Source: Blastocladiella emersonii ATCC 22665 (Eukaryota > Fungi > Blastocladiomycota). From it: a DNA stretch of 64,000 bases. Within the stretch, counting starts at the first letter, position 1, and every line of letters begins with the position of its first letter. Where the stretch lies: assembly GCA_025594325.1 (NCBI GenBank), contig JANHCV010000004.1:1550001-1614000 (forward strand), written 5' to 3'. The notes beneath the pieces were generated by a model. That model was not told where the DNA came from and did no database searches. It was given only the letters and a program-made list of their open reading frames with translations. Shown here one piece after another: positions 4,753-40,512 of this stretch. A program made the position numbers and the translations under genes.

Positions 4753-5197
4753 GGGTTTCCAGATTCATCAAGTGTCGGGGCAGGGGGTATCCGGTGGGGG
4801 GTATCGAGGGCAGCAGCTGCTGCGGCGCCGATGTGGCGAGTTCCGTGCCGCGGGCGGGCATCCGAGGTCCCGCCTGCCCGGGCAGCGACGCGTGCGTTCG
4901 GCGCGCCGTGCGTGTGAGAGACGCGTCTCTCATGACACGTGGTGTGGCGGCGTGCGACGGGAGTGGCGGGCCGATCAGCCTGCACGTTTTTTTGGCCGGC
5001 CGCCGCAGCGCGAACTCGAACGAGGAGCGACCGACGCGGCGCGGGCAATTCGAGTGCAGCGCCTGGCTTCCCCTTCTCTCCGCCGAAGCATAAAACCAAA
5101 CTCGCTCCCTGCAACGTATCGACACTCTCGACTGCGCGCAGTTGCTACGCATCGCTCAGCCATACCCAACCGCCCACCGACACCACCACGCGTCACC

Positions 5198-6342
5198 ATG
5201 GAACGGTGCGTTGGGCATCGGGACAACGCGAGCTCGTGCCCAGCACCGTGCTGACGGGCGCCCGCTGCCGCGCCGCGCCGCGTAGCTACGAGAAGCAGGA
5301 GAAGCTCGGCGAGGGCACCTACGCGACCGTCTTCAAGGGCATCTCGCGCCTGACGGGCGACATTGTCGCGCTCAAGGAGATCTCGCTCGACCCCGAGGAG
5401 GTACTGGACCCCTGCGCGTTGCGGGACTGACGGAGCCCGACGCGGCGCTGACGCACCCCCCTGTGCACCGTGTAGGGCGCGCCGAGTACCGCCATCCGCG
5501 AGATCTCGCTCATGAAGGAGCTCCGCCACCCCAACATTGTGCGGCTGCACGACGTGATCCACACCGAGAACAAGCTGATGCTCGTGTTCGAGTACATGGA
5601 CCAGGACCTGAAGCGGTTCATGGACCGCCACGGCCGCCACGGCGCGCTCGAGCCCGCCCTCATCAAGTCGTTCATGTACCAGCTGATGCGCGGCATCGCC
5701 TTCTGCCACGAGAACCGCGTGCTGCACCGCGACCTCAAGCCGCAGAACCTGCTCATCAACTCGCGCGGCGAGCTCAAGCTCGCCGATTTCGGTCTCGCGC
5801 GCGCCTTTGGGATCCCCGTCAACACGTTTTCGAATGAGGTGGTCACACTGTGGTACCGCGCGCCCGACGTGCTGCTCGGGTCGCGCAACTACTCGACGTC
5901 CATCGACATGTGGTCGACCGGGTGCATCATGGCCGAGATGTTCACGGGCCGCCCGCTGTTCCCGGGCAAGACCAACGAGGACGAGCTCAACCGCATCTTC
6001 CGCATCATGGGCACGCCCAGCGAGCTGACGTGGCCGGGCATCTCGCAGTACACCGAGTACAAGTCCAACTGGCAGTACCACCCGGCCGCGCCCTTCACCA
6101 CGCTGTTCCCGATGATGGACATGTACGCCATCGACCTGCTGCAGCGCCTGCTCCAGTACCAGCCGCAGCTCCGCGTCTCGGCCAAGGACGCGCTCAACCA
6201 CGCCTACTTCTCGGACATCCACAACATCTACAGCCAGGCCCAGCAGGCACAGAACAACGCCGCCGCCGCCGCCATGGCCGCGTCACACCAGCAGCAGCAG
6301 CAACACCACGCCATGCAGGGCCAGGTTAGCCAGTTCCAGTGA
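5198..6342 (+). CDS. PHO85: Pho85/CDK5-type cyclin-dependent kinase, 329 aa, with Ala/Gln-rich tail (exons 5198-5205, 5286-5400, 5476-6342)
   Basis: [62 protein letters not shown]; two canonical introns. Confidence 0.93.
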
Positions 6343-6480
6343 CCGTCGCGCGCTGTGCCCCTCATGAATGTACATTTTTCTTTCCACCTCGCCCTTTATC
6401 CCGCTCTCAGCAACCCGTGTACACCTCCGTGAAGCAAGAAAGTAAAGTTTTCGACTAGACACGGTACTCCCGTCAGCTCG

Positions 6481-7970
6481 TCACTGCATCGGGTCCTTGC
6501 CCAGGGCCTTGAGCGCGGCGTTGATCTCGCTCTTGTTCCGCTTCTTCATATCCGCGAGGATCTCCTCCCAGCACGTCTTGACGTCGCGCTTGAAGCGGGC
6601 GGCAATGTGGAACGACATGATCCGGTTCGGGTCGCCGACCGTGACTTGCTCCTGCACGCGGGCGGGCAGCCATCGTCAGTTCCCCGACTTAGAACTTGCG
6701 ATCCACGTTCGAAAGAACGTAGCACAGCAGCAGAGAAACGTACCTTGAAGCGCTTGTCGATGAACTCGAGGACCGGCTTGACGTCGTCGCTCGAACCCGT
6801 GTAGTCGGCGAAGCACTCGCACACCGTGATCGGGTCCTTGCGGATCTTGGACTCGAACAGGTCTTTTTTGTTGTGAATAATGTAGCACGGGAGCTTGGAA
6901 AACGCGGGATTGTTGATGGTCTGCTTGAAGAGCGTCAAACACTCCTTCATGCGGTTCTCGGTCGGGTCCTCGAACAGCACCGAGTTGTACCCGGCCAGGT
7001 TGCACAGGAACAGGATCCCGTTCACGTTGTCGAAGGCGTGGATCCATTTGCGACGCTCGTTGCGCTGGCCACCGACTACAAAGTGGAAGGGGTGGAGTGA
7101 GTGACCGTGGTCGCGCGGCCATGGCCACGGCCACCGTGCGGGCGGCGTTTCGCCGTACCATCCACGAGCGTCACGTTGATCGGTGGAATGGGAATGTCGG
7201 TCTGCAGGATGCCCACGGTCATGACTCGTGCCATGACAATGTCCTCCTCGGTCGGCTCAAAGTCGTCCTCGGCGAATCGCGCAATGTGCTCCATGTAGCT
7301 ACACGGCGCTCGGTGTCAGTGGCGCGCGGACCGAGGGTTGCAGAGCGCATAGGCATACAATTCGACGGCCTCGAGGATCCAGAACTCGGACCTGCGCGCG
7401 TACGTCTGCTTGATCGAGTCGTGCACCCATAGCGCCTGCGCGGCGGCGACGAGGTTCGGGTCCACCTCCTCGTCGAGCTCCTCGAGGTCGAGCGCCTCGA
7501 TCATGCTCGCCGACGACTACACACGGGAAGCGGTGAGCGGGGTGGACCGAAGCGCGAGGTGATGAGCGAGAGTGTGTACCTTGATGTCCTCGCCATCGAG
7601 CGGATAGCCGAACGTGTTGGCCTGGTTGACGAGGATGGTGATGCACTCGAGGGCGTTCTTGCGGAGCGACCGCGTAATGTCCTTGAGCTCCTGCGGCGTC
7701 AGGTTGATCTTGTGGATCAGCTTGATCAGCTTGAGCACCGTCGACTTGCCCGACTCGCCGGATCCTGGTTCGAGACGCGAGTGAGCGGTGGGACGAGTCG
7801 TGCGACGACAAACAGCGAGGCGTACCGAGCAGGAGCAGCTTGAGGTTCAGCTTCTCCTTGTGGGCCGACTCCTTGAGCTCGGCGTCAATGTTGCGCGAGC
7901 TCTCGTTGCCCGGGTTCAGGCCGCCAGTCTCGGACGGGTCGATCTTGCCCCCGCAGCACGGCAGCGGCAT
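6481..7970 (-). CDS. Heterotrimeric G-protein alpha subunit, divergent, 376 aa (exons 7970-7826, 7764-7580, 7516-7359, 7298-7159, 7075-6744, 6651-6481)
   Basis: G1 GSGESGKST, switch I RVMTVGI, G3 DVGGQR and G4 NKKD are all rebuilt in frame across 5 introns; the helical domain is present. Confidence 0.93.
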
Positions 7971-34080: not shown

Positions 34081-36817
34081 TCACTGCGAGTCGTACGACG
34101 GCCGGCCCGACGTGCGCCTATCACATCCGCCACCACTACGGACCTCGAGCCCGGGCGGGATGGGCGCGGGGAGCGGCGACAGCGGCGGGTCAAGTCTCGG
34201 CGACGCCATGGCGGGTTCGCTCGCGCGCGCGAGCGTCGTCATGTCGACCGAGTACTCGCACGCCGTTTCGTCGTGGCCCTCGTCGTCATCGTCGTCAGCG
34301 GCGGGCAGCGAGATGAGCCCGAGGTAGTGGAACGGCAGCACCTCGTCGTCCTCGTGCGCGCGCGTCGGCGACCCGCTGCCGCCCGCGTGGAGCGCGCTGC
34401 GTAAGCTGAGCGACCGCGCGAGCGACGCCATGGACGAGCCGTCGAGCGAGGGGAGCTGCAGGAGGAAGCTGAGTGTTGGCGACGCGCTGCGCGGAGGTTC
34501 GTCACCGATGGGCTGCTGGGTGCTGCTGAGCACGTTGCGCGCCGAGTTGGCGCGCCCGAGCCGGGTCAGGGCGTGCAGCGCGACGTTGAACGGCGTCGGG
34601 ACCATGGGCGGGTCGGGCACGGGAGCGGCAGGCGGTGGGATCGGGCGCGGGAGCGCGGGCATGTGGAACCCCTGGCTGCTGCCGTCGTCGTCACAATCCT
34701 CGTCGGTATCGGTCCCGTTCCCGTCATCGACCGCGTGCGGCGGGACGGACGTGGTCATGCTCGACGAGTGGTACGACCGGTGCGACTCGCCAACCACCGC
34801 TGTCGTTGCGCCGTACACGGGCTCGCTCTCCGTCTCCTCGCCGTCCTCGAACCGGTTCGGGTGCGGCAACGTGCCGGGCGGGAGAAACAGCGTAGGCTTG
34901 CGCGTGAGCGAGACGCGGTTCGACTTTGCCGTGCTCGGGTGCAGCGACGCGAGCGTCGGCGACTCGCCCGTGAACTGGTGCGGCGGCGTGGGCGTCGTCG
35001 GGGCCACGGCGGGCCGGAGCGATGGCGACAACCAGCTGCGCCGCGATGGGGACGCGCCGCCGCCACACGACGAGCTCGCTGCGTCGTCGCCGCCGCCGCC
35101 GCCGCACGCGTCGGTGAACCGCCGGTGGCGCCCGCTGACGGCCGTCGACGCCGATGCGGACGTGTCATCGTCGTCGTCGTCGTGGTCGAGCGGGCGGCCG
35201 AGATCCATCTCGGGCGCCCCTGCAGCGAGCGAGGGCGGCGCCGCGGCCGCGGCTGATGTGTCGAGCACCGGCGTGTGCCGCCAAAGCGTCCACATGGCCA
35301 TGGCGTCGTGCGCGCCGCCGCTGCCGCCTCCAAGCGAGCTGTGGATGGTCCCGCCGCCCTGCGACTGCGGCCGTGCGCGGGACGATCCCTGCAGCGGTGC
35401 GCTCGCAGCCGCGATCATGCTGAGCCGTGGGCCCGCCGTGACCGGCCGCTGCCCCGCCGCTGCCGCGCCACCGCGCTTGGCCACCGAGTGGAACGAGCCT
35501 GTGACGGACGCGTAGTCGTCGAACGAGTGCTCGGACCCGATCCACGACGCGCGCGCCGCGTGGTGGTCGGCGAACGGCGGGTGCAGCATGGCGCCGTACG
35601 ACGATGCGACGGACGGCGCGGGGCGCGGGCTCTCGAGGCCGGGCGGCGGGTCGGGGAGGAAGGTCGGGGCGAGGGCGAGCGGGGTGCCGTCGGGACCCGA
35701 CTGGGTGTGCGGCGGTGGCGGCGGCGGCGGATGTTGGCCGAGCGTCGACAGGATCGAGGCGCGCCTCCGCCCGAGGAACGCGCCCTCGGCCGGCGCACCG
35801 GGTGGTAGTGGAGGCGGCGGGGCGTGCGAGTGGCGGCGGGCGTGGACGAGCTGGATCCGCTGTTCCTCTTCGAGAAACTTGGCGCGGCGGCGGTAGCGGA
35901 ACGCGGCGAACGCGAGGACAACGAGCAGCAGGCCCGTGACGGTGCCGGCGACCACGGCCATGGTGATCTGCCACGAGGTCGCAGGCAAGGAGGGGGTTGG
36001 GCACGCGGTGACGGACGCGGTGGCCAGCGTTGAGCGGCAGGGCGTCGGGATCGACTCGGAGTAGCACGAGTAGGCGTTGGTGCCACCAGCCAGTTCGCAG
36101 GCGGCGACCGAAAGCGGGAGGCTCGGGACGGACCCGATCAGACGGTTGTTGGCGAGCGAGCTACGCGATGACGGTAAGACTCAGGCTACAACTGAAGCGG
36201 CGCGTCGAGGCGTACGTACAGTGTCCGCAGGTCGCGCAGGTCGGCGAGCGAGGCGGGAATCGGGCCCGTGAGCGAGTTCTTGTCAAGCGCGCTAGCCATC
36301 CGCGTCAGTCTCGAGCCATGGGCACGACGGAGTGGTGGGCGAGCGTACAGAGTCTGGAGGCCGACCAGGGTGCCGTACGTGTACGGGATGGTGCCCGTGA
36401 GCTGGTTGTTGCTCAGATTCCTACTCGCGCACTTGGGCCGTGAGTTATCCAGTAACCAGAGCGCTGCGAGTCAAGAAGGAACGCACAGCGACGTGAGCGA
36501 CGACACGAGCGCGAGCTGCAGCGGCAGCGTCCCGTTGAGCCCGAGCCCGGACCAGTCTCTACCCGTTGCGAGCGAGGCGTCAGCGAACAACTTGCCGACA
36601 ATGAATGGAGCCAAGCGGTCGCGACCTACATGCTCCGGACCTGGCCGGGCGCGGAGCAGGCGACGCCGCGCCACCCGCAGCACGCGTCGTTAGCCTGCCG
36701 CGCCGATTCGGGAAGCCCCGCGGTCAGAGCGGCCGCGTCGATCTGGACGCAGTCGGTCGGCGGCGCGGCAGTCGTTGCTGTTGGCAGGGCAGCAGAGGCG
36801 GTGGTTGTCGATGACAT
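34081..36817 (-). CDS. LRR receptor-like protein 1: Cys N-cap, 4 plant-type LRRs, Cys C-cap, single TM, long disordered tail, no kinase; 827 aa (exons 36817-36630, 36558-36487, 36420-36349, 36291-36220, 36160-34081)
   Basis: CCGWRGVAC cap, repeats LxLxxNxLxGxIP, and TM MAVVAGTVTGLLLVVLAFAAF followed by RYRRR. There are three internal exons of exactly 72 nt. Confidence 0.85.
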
Positions 36818-37462
36818 GGTTGGTGATCAGATCGGCGTGGGCGGCAGCGGCGAAGAAGCGCGGAGTCTTCACGGCACGCGTGGTCGCGATCCGTTGCAAG
36901 AGGTGCGATGCGACGACGACCTTGTCGGCGTCGTGCAGGTTACATTGGCAGAGCGCAGGGGCAGCGACGGCGGAGGGACCCGTTTGCTGTCTTCCTCTCT
37001 GCATCGCTTCGTCGGACTTGCCCGAACCGCCCCCCGCCGCCGCCACCGCCACTACGCCGTCCGGCCGTTCGACGACACGCGGTGCACCCTTGTTGCGGGG
37101 CCGCCATCATCATCCGACGTCCATTGTCCTGACGACGACGGGGAACGGAACGCGGCGTGATGCTCCCATCGAAGGCGGTGACGCGTTGCGCCAAGACCCG
37201 CGAGAAGAGCGAGCTTCTCTCGCTGCTGCGACGTCGCAGGCCGAAGCGTCGCTGGCGGCCGCGGGCGCGCGTGCTGGTCCAGACCCGCGAGCGCGCGCGT
37301 GGGACGTGCGGTGCGTACGGTGGAGCGCCTGAAACGCGTCGTGTCGCGTTGTTCATTTCGGTCGGCGCGCCGCGTCAGGTCGTCGTGGAAACCGCAGTGT
37401 AGCAAAGATGGGGGTATCAAAAACACAACTTCACACCGCGCGCGCACCACTTCTACGCTGCT

Positions 37463-39565
37463 TCACCATTGCCGCCCCGTCGTCGGCGGCCCCTGCCCCT
37501 GCGGCTGTTGCTGCGGGTGACCGTCCATGACGAACCGCTCGCGCACGGGGCTCCCGCGCGGGCCCGCCGCCACGAGCGCCTGCGTCCACGACGTGCGGTA
37601 CCCGGCCGCGCCGGCCGACGGCAGTGTACGCGAGTGGCTGGCCGCGGACCCGGGCCGCGACAGCGCGGGCGCCGGCGGGAGGTACAGCGCGGGCGCCGGC
37701 GGGAGGTACAGCCGGCCGCCGCCGCCGTCGCTGTCGCTCTCGTACCCACCACCGCCGCCCGTGCCCGCGCGAGACCGGCCACCGTCGTACTCGCCGCCGC
37801 CACCGCCGCCTTCGTGGCTGCTGCTGCTCCCGACCGTGATCCACGACGACCGAATATCGGCCGCCGCGGTGCTGCCGCGCGAATGGCGGTGCCCGCGTGC
37901 GTGGCCGTGCCCGCTCGTCAACGTGGTCGCGACCGAGTCAGCAGCACTCGTCCGGCGTGACGCCCCCGGCGTGCCGCCGGCGGACTGCGTGCTGCCGCGC
38001 CGGCCAAACGACGCGAGCGACGCGAACCAGCTGCTGCGCTTCTTGTCGCCGCCGCCTGGGACACTGCGCCGCAGCGGGCCCTCGCCGACGAGCGTCTCGA
38101 CGTTGCTCTCGGCCGGGGTCGGCGGGACGCCGGCGTCCGACTCGTCGGTCATGGTCGCGCGCGAGACGCGCCGCGATTCGGTGGCGGGCGGATGCTGGTA
38201 CGGCGCGCTCTGCACGCTCCATCGCGGCGGCTGACCGACCGGGGCGGGGCCCGTCGGCGCGCTCTGCGGCCGCGGCGCGTGCAGCGGGTCCTGGACCCAC
38301 CCCGGAGGCGGCGGCGGGTACCCACGGCCCGCCGGCCACGACGCGTGCTGCTGCTGTGGCTGCTGGCCGGCGTAACTGTACCCGGCCGGGCTCGTCGGGT
38401 ACATGGGCGCGTGCGGCGGCGGCGGCGGCGGACACCGCGGATCGACGACCCCCACCCCGCGCGCAGGGATCTGGTCCGGGAACAAGAGCCGCGGCGGCGC
38501 CGAGGGCGCGCGGACCTCGTGCGTGTTTTGGTCCATGAGGAACGCGGGCGCGTCGTCGTCGTCGACGATGGTACTCGCGCGGTGCGCGTGCGGGTCGCGG
38601 TGCGCGGCGGCCTCCTCGATGGCGTGCAGCTGGGCGAGCAGCCGGTGCTTCTTGTCGCGGAGCGCGCGCCGCTGCGAGTCCCACCGGCACAGCACCACGG
38701 CGATGATGATCACGGCGAGGACCGCCACGGCGCTGCTGCCTATCGCGATCACGATCTCCTGCTCCCAGAAGGGTTTCGGGCACGCGGGGACGGAGGGGCC
38801 GAGCGACGCGACGCAGGGCGCGGGCGCGGGCGTTGTGTAGCAGGTGAAGGGCGAGGAGGGGCCGGCGGAGCTTGGGAGCACGCACGCCGAGATGGAGAGC
38901 GGGAGCGAGGGCACGGTGCCCGACAGGCGGTTGCCCGCGAGGTCGAGGACGGCGAGGTTGGACAGGCTCGAGATGGTCGGCGGGATGGAGCCCGTCAGGT
39001 TGTTCTGGGAGAGCGACCTACACGCGCACGCGGGCGGGTGAGGTGCAGATGAGGCGCGCGGTGCGTCACGAGAACGTACAGCTGGCGCAGCGCCGTCATG
39101 TCGCCGATCTTGAAGGGCACCTCGCCAAAGATCTTGTTTCCGCGCAGGTCGCTTCGCTGGAGGTCAGTTCCGATCCATCGCACGCCGACACCCAGAGAAC
39201 GTACAGGACGGTGAGCGCGCGGAGCCTCACCACATCTTCGGGGATAGTCCCGACGAGGTCACTCTGAGGCCACGTTCTACACATCCACACCCCCACAGAT
39301 CAGCTCCCTCGCCCTACGACTCGAACCAGCCGCTCAAACATACGAACATGCGCAGGACGCGGCCATCGCCGCCGCACGCCACGCCCTTCCACGCGCAGCA
39401 CGGCGCGTCGGCGGGCGTGTCGGCGGGGTTGCGGGCCAGCGCGGTCCCGAGGTCGCGCACCGTGGCGCAGTCGCCCGCGGGGGCGCCGGCGGCGGCCGCG
39501 GCGGCGGCGTCGGACTCGGCGAGGTGCTCGGGCGGCTCTAGCGGCCGTGCTGGGTGCGGTGACAT
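37463..39565 (-). CDS. LRR receptor-like protein 2 (tandem paralog), 638 aa (exons 39565-39348, 39276-39205, 39151-39080, 39017-37463)
   Basis: CCAWKGVAC cap, 4 plant-type LRRs, the same 4-Cys C-cap, and TM IVIAIGSSAVAVLAVIIIAVVLC. It has two 72-nt exons and requires a GTTCGT donor and an AAG acceptor. Confidence 0.82.
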
Positions 39566-39923
39566 GGTAACAGCGCCGATGGGTGGCGGATCAGTCAGAG
39601 ATACATGGGGCGGCGGCGCGGCTATATGGTCGGTTCCCGCACGGTGCACGGACAAGGGAGAGGAGAAGCGGGGCGCGGTGCCTGCAGCGGCCGGCCGGCC
39701 AAGGTTGAAAGGGAAACCTTCCCAACGCGTGCGATCTACCCGCTGCGGCGGCGCACACGTGGGCACGCGTTATACTTGGCTGCCTATCCTGCCCCCTTCG
39801 CGCGCCTTCAAGGTCTGCAACCGTACGCACTTGCGACCATGAAACTCGATGCATCGGGCTCGCGCTCATAAAGACTTGTGAAGTTGACCGTTGCGGCTCC
39901 GCGCTCCCCAGACTCTTGCCACC

Positions 39924-40512
39924 ATGTCCGCCGCAACCGCCGCCGTCTCCAAGGTCTTCCAGTTCGGCAAGTGGACGATCCCCGCCGGCGAGGTGTTCCT
40001 CGTCACGCGGCTGTCGTACGCCATGGTCAACTTCAAGCCGATCCTGCCGTACGCCCTCCCCTCCCGCTCCCTCCCTCCCCACTCACCTCCCCCCACGACC
40101 ATCTAGCGGCCACGTCCTCGTCTGCCCGCGCCGCCTGGCACCTCGCTTCTCGGACCTGACGTCAGACGAGGTGACGGACCTGTGGCTGACCGCTCAAACC
40201 GTGGGCCGCGTCGTCGAGCGCGAGTACGAGGGCTCGTCGCTGACGTTCTCGGTGCAGGACGGCGTGGCCGCGGGGCAGACGGTGCACCACGTTCACATCC
40301 ACGTCATCCCGCGCCGCGCGGGCGATTTCGAGAACAACGACGATATCTACACGGCGATCGAGGGGCACGAGAAGGCGAGTGCCGGGGTTCTCGAGAAGAA
40401 GGCGGCCCCGCCGATGGATAACGAGGAGCGTCCGCCCCGCACGCTCGAGGATATGATGGCCGAGGCCAAGGCGCTCCGCGGCTTCTTTGAGCAGTTTGAG
40501 TCGCTCGACTAG
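39924..40512 (+). CDS. HNT2: FHIT/Hnt2 dinucleoside triphosphate hydrolase, 176 aa (exons 39924-40048, 40107-40512)
   Basis: VNFKPILPGHVLVCPRR, QDGVAAGQTVHHVHIHVIPR (HIT motif), DFENNDDIY. Confidence 0.95.

Follow-up and report, generated by a model that had tools for sequence, protein, structure and literature searches.

Receptors that combine leucine-rich repeats (LRRs) with a transmembrane (TM) segment were found to be almost absent from fungi in a 2010 survey, which reported five such genes in four species and, as far as the survey text shows, sampled no blastoclad (PMC2939053). Two adjacent genes of the early-diverging fungus Blastocladiella emersonii ATCC 22665, here called gene A and gene B, raise a question: what are plant-type LRR proteins without a kinase doing in this organism, and are they part of a modular and diversifying receptor family, as a preliminary description of the DNA had proposed? 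That description had also placed the DNA in a fungus, which is borne out. The two genes lie head-to-tail on the minus strand of a window of 64,000 nucleotides (nt), which is the whole stretch of DNA analysed (contig JANHCV010000004.1, positions 1,550,001 to 1,614,000; ~70% G+C). We find that one repeat per 72-nt exon is a design that recurs across the genome, that A and B belong to a family of predicted single-pass membrane proteins, and that the variation expected of a diversifying receptor is seen in other members of this family rather than in A and B.

Exon structure and protein anatomy of genes A and B

The exon chains that we predict (Table 1) give products of 638 codons for gene A and 827 codons for gene B, and both products are public as hypothetical proteins of B. 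emersonii ATCC 22665, H9P43_004312 (P0001, 638 aa) for gene A and H9P43_004311 (P0043, KAI9183394.1, 827 aa) for gene B, with lengths and every junction matching our chains. The junctions rest on splice signals, reading frame, colinearity with paralogues and orthologues, and the deposited gene predictions; the deposited annotation was made with funannotate, and the agreement is one of prediction with prediction, not with cDNA. The exons were searched individually, and full-length analyses ran on the two public proteins.

At the positions first reported for them, each of the five internal exons is exactly 72 nt long and lies between AG and GT. Each carries one leading and two trailing bases and all introns of both genes are in phase 2, so that the exons are symmetric, as had been proposed. 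Phase-2 translation of each yields one 24-residue repeat of the form xLxxNxLxGxIPxxhxxLxxLxx, in keeping with the single LxLxxNxLxGxIP repeat per exon of the preliminary description. The further claim that these introns all fall at a common Leu codon holds in part: the split codon is CT/N (Leu; the slash marks the intron) at junctions between repeats, but at the homologous position between the N-terminal cap (N-cap) and the first repeat it is AT/A (Ile). In gene A, LRR3 and LRR4 share one exon, with no intron between them. The donor of gene A intron 1 is GTTCGT and the acceptor of intron 2 is AAG; a CAG located 5 nt upstream of this AAG (39152-39160, minus strand) would shift the frame into an early stop, and the deposited model likewise uses the AAG.

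The two proteins have the same order of parts. A short, non-hydrophobic start is followed by a four-Cys N-cap (DC...CCxWxGVxC, with the sequence CAWKGVAC in A and CGWRGVAC in B), four 24-residue repeats, a C-terminal cap (C-cap) with four Cys, a TM helix, a basic cluster, and a tail of 407 residues in A and 605 residues in B that is rich in Pro, Ser and Ala and predicted to be disordered. Thus, the CxWxGVxC N-cap, the common four-Cys C-cap, the single TM and the lack of a kinase all stand as originally described. Pfam reports LRR_1, LRR_4 and LRR_8 above their cut-offs in P0001 and P0043, and no further domain; single exons gave sub-threshold matches to LRRNT_2 and LRR profiles, and the full-length proteins were needed to bring the LRR matches above cut-off. 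In a Pfam scan of ten family members (A, B and eight relatives), LRRs were the sole domains: no kinase domain was detected, nor was a ROC-COR GTPase domain found after the LRRs. The juxtamembrane segment is conserved between A and B (RRA...LLAQLHA and RRRA...IQLVHA), and in the structural model described below it is a predicted helix continuous with the TM (model residues 204-260).

Table 1. Features of genes A and B, as predicted, and of one neighbouring gene (positions in the window).
Feature	Position	Strand	Remarks
Gene A exon 1	39348..39565	-	start codon 39565-39563; N-cap with four Cys (C33, CC56-57, C64; CCAWKGVAC); phase-2 end AT/GTTCGT
Gene A exon 2	39205..39276	-	72 nt, LRR1 (TWPQSDLVGTIPEDVVRLRALTV)
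Gene A exon 3	39080..39151	-	72 nt, LRR2; preceded by AAG acceptor
Gene A exon 4	37463..39017	-	LRR3, LRR4, C-cap, TM, predicted disordered tail; stop 37465-37463
Gene A C-cap	38780..38884	-	Cys166 to Cys200 (C..FTC..PC..ACP)
Gene A transmembrane helix	38687..38755	-	residues 209-231; followed by RWDSQRRALRDKKHR
Gene A juxtamembrane segment	38590..38686	-	conserved with gene B
Gene A tail motif	37676..37711	-	LYLPPAPALYLP, two copies, within 24-nt tandem repeat 37660-37721
Gene B exon 1	36630..36817	-	start codon 36817-36815; N-cap (DC..CCGWRGVAC); end AT/GTAGGT
Gene B exon 2	36487..36558	-	72 nt, LRR1
Gene B exon 3	36349..36420	-	72 nt, LRR2
Gene B exon 4	36220..36291	-	72 nt, LRR3
Gene B exon 5	34081..36160	-	LRR4, C-cap (36001-36099), TM (35899-35967), 605-residue predicted disordered tail; stop 34083-34081
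Gene B juxtamembrane segment	35830..35898	-	conserved with gene A
Gene B tail motif LFLP	34879..34890	-	context TLFLPPGTLP
HIT-family gene	39916..40512	+	HVHIHVIPR; one intron; divergent from gene A

A cassette-exon family in Blastocladiomycota

The 72-nt exon design occurs in the B. emersonii genome far beyond chance. We searched the whole genome with two degenerate DNA patterns, composed of Asn-x-Leu-x-Gly-x-h-Pro, a variable gap and a CT/GT splice site, in which 31 gap lengths (first pattern) or 19 gap lengths (second pattern) were permitted; reversed patterns served as controls. The first pattern gave 28 matches, compared to 0 for its control, and 25 of the 28 had the 72-nt spacing (2 were at 69 and 1 at 75). 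The looser pattern gave 56 matches, again compared to 0, of which 48 showed the 72-nt spacing, 5 a spacing of 69 and 1 of 75. The matches define at least 17 gene-sized loci on 11 contigs; this number is a lower bound, since just three of the five exons in the window fit the pattern. A scripted check of the retrieved loci found runs of 72-nt phase-2 LRR exons at many other places.

This layout is shared with two other lineages. In rice LRR-kinase genes, too, the exons are 72 nt long and phase-2 introns interrupt the codon of the first Leu in xxLxLxx, and plant LRR-kinase genes thus resemble the family of A and B in having one repeat per 72-nt exon with identical intron position and phase (PMC3050792). 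Brown-algal ROCO genes, whose LRRs are exon-shuffled, also have 72-bp phase-2 exons of one LRR each (PMC11378527), and because the layout occurs in these genes too, it is not diagnostic of plants. The ROCO genes also resemble the blastoclad family in tandem cassette expansion and in variation at the concave face, but they encode cytosolic LRR-ROC-COR GTPases with a different repeat consensus, whereas the blastoclad proteins are predicted to be membrane-anchored and have the plant-type LxGxIP repeat with Cys caps and no ROC-COR.

When A and B were compared with their own genome, only these two matched each other strongly over the C-cap and TM. Weaker matches led to nine paralogues that share the C-cap signature C..NxF[ST]C..(G)PC[FY]..LPxCP, a TM and RRRR; three Cys are invariant in the C-cap alignment of the 9 paralogues. 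Several other weak matches proved to be non-members, namely L009 (a CCR4-type LRR nuclease), L013/L016, L012, L017 and L027. A profile of the C-cap and TM, run against 1.84 billion representative proteins, returned 49 matches (A at 1.5e-19, B at 5.1e-21), and the named genuine members among these all come from B. emersonii, B. britannica, Catenaria anguillulae and Allomyces arbusculus. The non-blastoclad matches P0075, P0061, P0071 and P0082 were dropped as unrelated look-alikes that combine a Cys-rich region, a TM and RRRR. On the evidence of these searches, the family is traced only in Blastocladiomycota (Blastocladiella, Catenaria and Allomyces). Its members are deposited as hypothetical proteins, with automatic LRR names in UniRef for some of those from Catenaria, and our literature search found no publications on the family.

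Within this family, A and B are colinear and 37% identical over the head and TM, and B is equally close to an Allomyces protein (P0073) that also has four repeats and a long tail. A tree built from the C-terminal module groups A and B with P0073 in a supported clade (96/90), within which A is placed beside P0073 (92/89). Given the colinearity, the level of identity and the supported clade with an Allomyces protein, A and B are old, conserved tandem paralogues rather than a diversifying pair, and their duplication is probably older than the split between Blastocladiella and Allomyces.

The idea of a modular, diversifiable family therefore has to be divided, as it is supported at the level of the family but not for A and B. 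In the C20 paralogue (L028), nine consecutive 72-nt exons are present and the exon plus intron unit is repeated in tandem every 143 nt (9.3 copies, 90% identity); the C6 paralogue (L029) has 4.4 tandem copies of a 143-nt unit, with 86% identity. These repeats are recent. We compared their exons and introns with respect to the six codons predicted to lie on the concave face (x2, x3, x5, x7, x8 and x10). Among the C20 copies, 12 of 18 sites in concave-face codons are variable, compared to 7 of 71 intron sites (Fisher p = 2e-6), and among the C6 copies the counts are 13 of 18 and 9 of 71 (p = 1.7e-6); these p-values overstate the case, because the copies are few, related and not independent. Most of the variable codons alter the amino acid. 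Diversifying selection acting on a binding face would be expected to produce such a pattern. Near-identical repeats are also seen, at the protein level, in a Catenaria member (P0047). For A and B, in contrast, Tandem Repeats Finder detected no DNA-level repeat among the LRR exons, and no swapped cassette was found between the two genes, for which the repeat-by-repeat identity matrix is weakly diagonal.

Several members have unusual gene structures. The C6 cassette gene (G000:C6:799000-807000, minus orientation, 4845-6998) loses its frame after five LRR exons, and downstream of it is a 718-codon open frame that, read by eye, is a retrotransposon gag-pol; this suggests that an insertion has cut the gene short. 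Another member (L015/L022, G000:C16:1467333-1470512), located about 80 kb away from the window, is a single open reading frame (ORF) of 911 codons with an intronless LRR region, which may represent intron loss or a retrocopy within a cassette family. The Catenaria model P0051 contains two full family units, with two heads, two TMs and the tail pair EELYLPPP...ELxLPGDKP twice, and the B. emersonii protein P0042 (C1:2.74 Mb) has an additional Cys-rich region as well as a second TM; in both cases, separate genes have probably been fused in the model.

Plant likeness, topology and the tail motif

The preliminary description considered the repeats, cap and intron placement to be of plant type, and both the intron comparison above and the predicted fold agree. 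We built an AlphaFold model from a 16-sequence family alignment; the predicted local distance difference test (pLDDT) score exceeds 90 over residues 30-170 and is 73-91 over residues 171-200. The best Foldseek matches in the PDB are BAK1, BIR3, SERK1/2, SOBIR1 and BIR2, with target TM-scores of 0.6-0.8 and, for BAK1, BIR3, SERK1/2 and SOBIR1, E-values of 2e-10 to 4e-8; the top 50 PDB neighbours listed are all plant LRR proteins, nearly all of them receptor ectodomains. When the PDB is searched by sequence, the N-cap and LRRs align to the N-termini of plant receptor ectodomains, and the nearest cluster in a protein-language-model Atlas is BIR2-like. A word-based protein search with the last exon of gene A returned, besides gene A itself, only plant LRR proteins that matched ~30% of the query and two LRR proteins of type II (one from JGI, the other from a chytrid), and no orthologues. 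Thus, as modelled, the head fold of A and B is closest to the ectodomains of the plant co-receptors and adaptors BAK1/SERK, BIR and SOBIR1.

The likeness to these plant proteins is limited to part of the architecture. BAK1/SERK1-3, BIR2/3 and SOBIR1 share with A and B the CxWxGVxC N-cap, four to five 24-residue repeats, a Cys-containing C-cap and one TM, but they have signal peptides and a cytoplasmic kinase or pseudokinase; A and B instead have a different four-Cys C-cap (family form C..NxF[ST]C..PC[FY]..LPxCP) and predicted disordered tails of 400-600 residues with [LIV][YF]LP. Plant LRR receptor-like proteins (LRR-RLPs), such as RXEG1 and TMM, are similar to A and B in having an LRR head, a TM and a kinase-less tail. 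However, these plant proteins start with a signal peptide, usually contain 20-30 repeats and an island domain, end in a very short tail and signal through SOBIR1, and no such feature was found in A and B. The oomycete LRR receptor kinases (PMC2939053, PMC8254037) likewise have a short plant-like LRR head on a single-pass protein in a non-plant, fungus-like host, but they contain about two repeats and a kinase domain, which the blastoclad family lacks. Since they have no signal peptide, no kinase and long tails, A and B are set outside the plant families of LRR receptor-like kinases and LRR-RLPs; they are a variant of the LRR receptor-like type, not members of a plant family.

The lack of a signal peptide, a complication that the preliminary description had not weighed, is general, as none was detected in the 18 family proteins considered (A, B and 16 relatives from four species). 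In all 18, the N-terminal 40 residues remain below the hydrophobicity of a signal peptide (12-residue Kyte-Doolittle maximum ≤1.9), a level that the TM does reach. Two features bear on how these proteins sit in the membrane. Summed over 21 members, the segments that flank the TM have a net charge of -23 on its N-terminal side and +90 on its C-terminal side, and the heads usually contain 8 Cys, while the tails of 16 of the 21 members contain none. On the basis of flank charge and Cys distribution, the LRR head is predicted to be outside. These sequence features are most simply read as N-out insertion, in which the TM would serve as a type III reverse signal-anchor.

The tails had been described as disordered and unrelated; disorder is indeed predicted, but the tails are not unrelated. 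They align nowhere by BLAST, yet they share a short motif, [LIV][YF]LP, seen in both proteins as [YF]LPP, that often follows acidic residues, often occurs in two copies and usually lies in the last 80 residues. The strict motif is found 12 times in ten B. emersonii tails, compared to 0.12 times in shuffled tails, and the relaxed motif 29 times in 21 tails from all three genera, compared to 1.9 ± 1.3 in shuffles; 17 of the 21 proteins contain it. The tail of gene A has two copies, LYLPPAPALYLPPAPA; they are encoded within a tandem repeat whose unit is 24 nt (2.6 copies, 94% matches), so that the LYLPPAPA motif was copied recently. The single copy in gene B, TLFLPPGTLP, has a counterpart, TLSLPPATLP, at the aligned position of the Allomyces protein P0073.

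Possible functions and what they would mean

In the explanation that we favour, A and B arose by an ancient duplication and still lie side by side, and their family of single-pass membrane proteins is, as far as it could be traced, confined to Blastocladiomycota. The LRR head would face outward, after insertion without a cleavable signal peptide in which the TM acts as a type III reverse signal-anchor, and would bind a ligand or a partner ectodomain. Output would pass through the tail, most plausibly by docking of a cytoplasmic or sorting factor on the conserved acidic-[LIV][YF]LP motif. A and B would represent a conserved, four-repeat, long-tail, co-receptor-like branch, not the fast-evolving branch of the family. 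By analogy with the plant proteins, we think that A and B are rather probably outward-facing recognition or co-receptor-like proteins with output via the tail motif.

A number of points weigh against this explanation. The label ‘receptor’ is given by analogy only. A signal peptide would normally be expected on a disulfide-rich ectodomain of 170-330 residues, and translocation of so long an N-terminal domain by a signal-anchor is uncommon. The N-cap profile of Pfam, LRRNT_2 (PF08263), scores 14.5 bits in A and 13.4 bits in B, below the curated cut-off of 20.7; the match covers the last 13 positions of the profile, and one paralogue scores 21.2 bits. The tail motif is missing from 4 of the 21 members, and to our knowledge it fits none of the YxxPhi, acidic dileucine, PPxY/LPxY, YPxL, EVH1 or LIR motifs. 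The deposited gene models are predictions, and we found no mention of RNA-seq in the genome paper.

The strongest competitor, which we nevertheless regard as unlikely, is that these proteins are passive surface adhesins or wall-membrane linkers, with a head that would attach to matrix, wall or host surfaces and a tail whose only task would be sorting or anchoring. The absence of a catalytic domain from every scanned member, the disordered tails rich in Pro, Ser and Ala, and the frequent position of the motif near the C-terminus, where sorting signals lie, would all suit such a role, as would the biology of the group, in that Catenaria is a nematode parasite and zoospores need attachment. However, the heads of A and B match in size and shape the plant co-receptor ectodomains that act in signalling complexes, and tails 400-600 residues in length, in which paired motifs and a basic juxtamembrane helix are conserved, resemble docking platforms more closely. 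We give much less weight to an inverted topology, in which the LRRs would be cytosolic, or to a head that is not exported because the protein resides in an internal membrane. Either would explain why there is no signal peptide (none of the 18 members has an N-terminal hydrophobic segment) and why the Met of most B. emersonii paralogues stands just 4-11 residues ahead of the first Cys (as in MSSSDC, MPTADC and MASDC), but the flank charges strongly favour N-out/C-in, the eight conserved Cys occupy cap positions that are disulfide-bonded in plant ectodomains, while most tails lack Cys, and the closest folds are all extracellular domains.

The signal peptide might also be missing only from the gene models, if a short 5' exon had been overlooked, which is conceivable for funannotate predictions whose genome paper makes no mention of transcript evidence that we could find. 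We consider this very improbable. The ~360 nt upstream of gene A, which extend to the divergent HIT-family gene, contain no in-frame ATG and no hydrophobic ORF and leave no room for an exon encoding a signal peptide; in gene B, an in-frame TGA precedes the ATG by 12 nt; and most paralogues and orthologues, from four species annotated under separate locus-tag schemes (H9P43, BC828DRAFT, BCR44DRAFT and GGF31), retain a Met 4-14 residues ahead of the first Cys. As an account of origin, acquisition of the family from a plant or an alga by horizontal transfer is equally doubtful. Plant proteins provide all of the best matches in sequence and structure, and the introns have the same position and phase as in plant LRR-kinase genes (PMC3050792), but the family is present in three genera with deep paralogy, its composition (~70% GC) and intron signals (GTACGT, a CTGAC-like branch and 3' YAG) are native, the C-cap/TM module has no plant counterpart among the 1.84 billion proteins searched, and the 72-nt phase-2 layout also occurs in brown-algal ROCO genes.

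Against the near absence of such receptors in the 2010 survey, a single early-diverging fungus has at least 17 cassette-exon loci, with relatives of the family in three genera. The family provides a non-plant, non-algal case of one repeat per 72-nt exon, and it bears on whether this architecture is ancestral or convergent. It is also a natural set of long, disulfide-rich N-terminal domains without a signal peptide, and as such a problem in membrane-protein biogenesis, and the candidate docking motif of the tails could lead to a signalling or sorting partner. B. emersonii is under development as a model organism, so that these ideas can be tested at the bench. A broader and more tentative proposal, to which we would give no more than a small share of our belief, is that Blastocladiomycota may have a surface recognition system of their own, with plant-type LRR heads, type III export, readout by a previously undescribed acidic-[LIV][YF]LP tail motif in place of a kinase, and diversification by tandem duplication of 72-nt exon cassettes under selection on the binding face. 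If this were true, the intron position that the family shares with plants and brown algae would make the 72-nt phase-2 LRR exon an ancient eukaryotic module that has been kept in an opisthokont.

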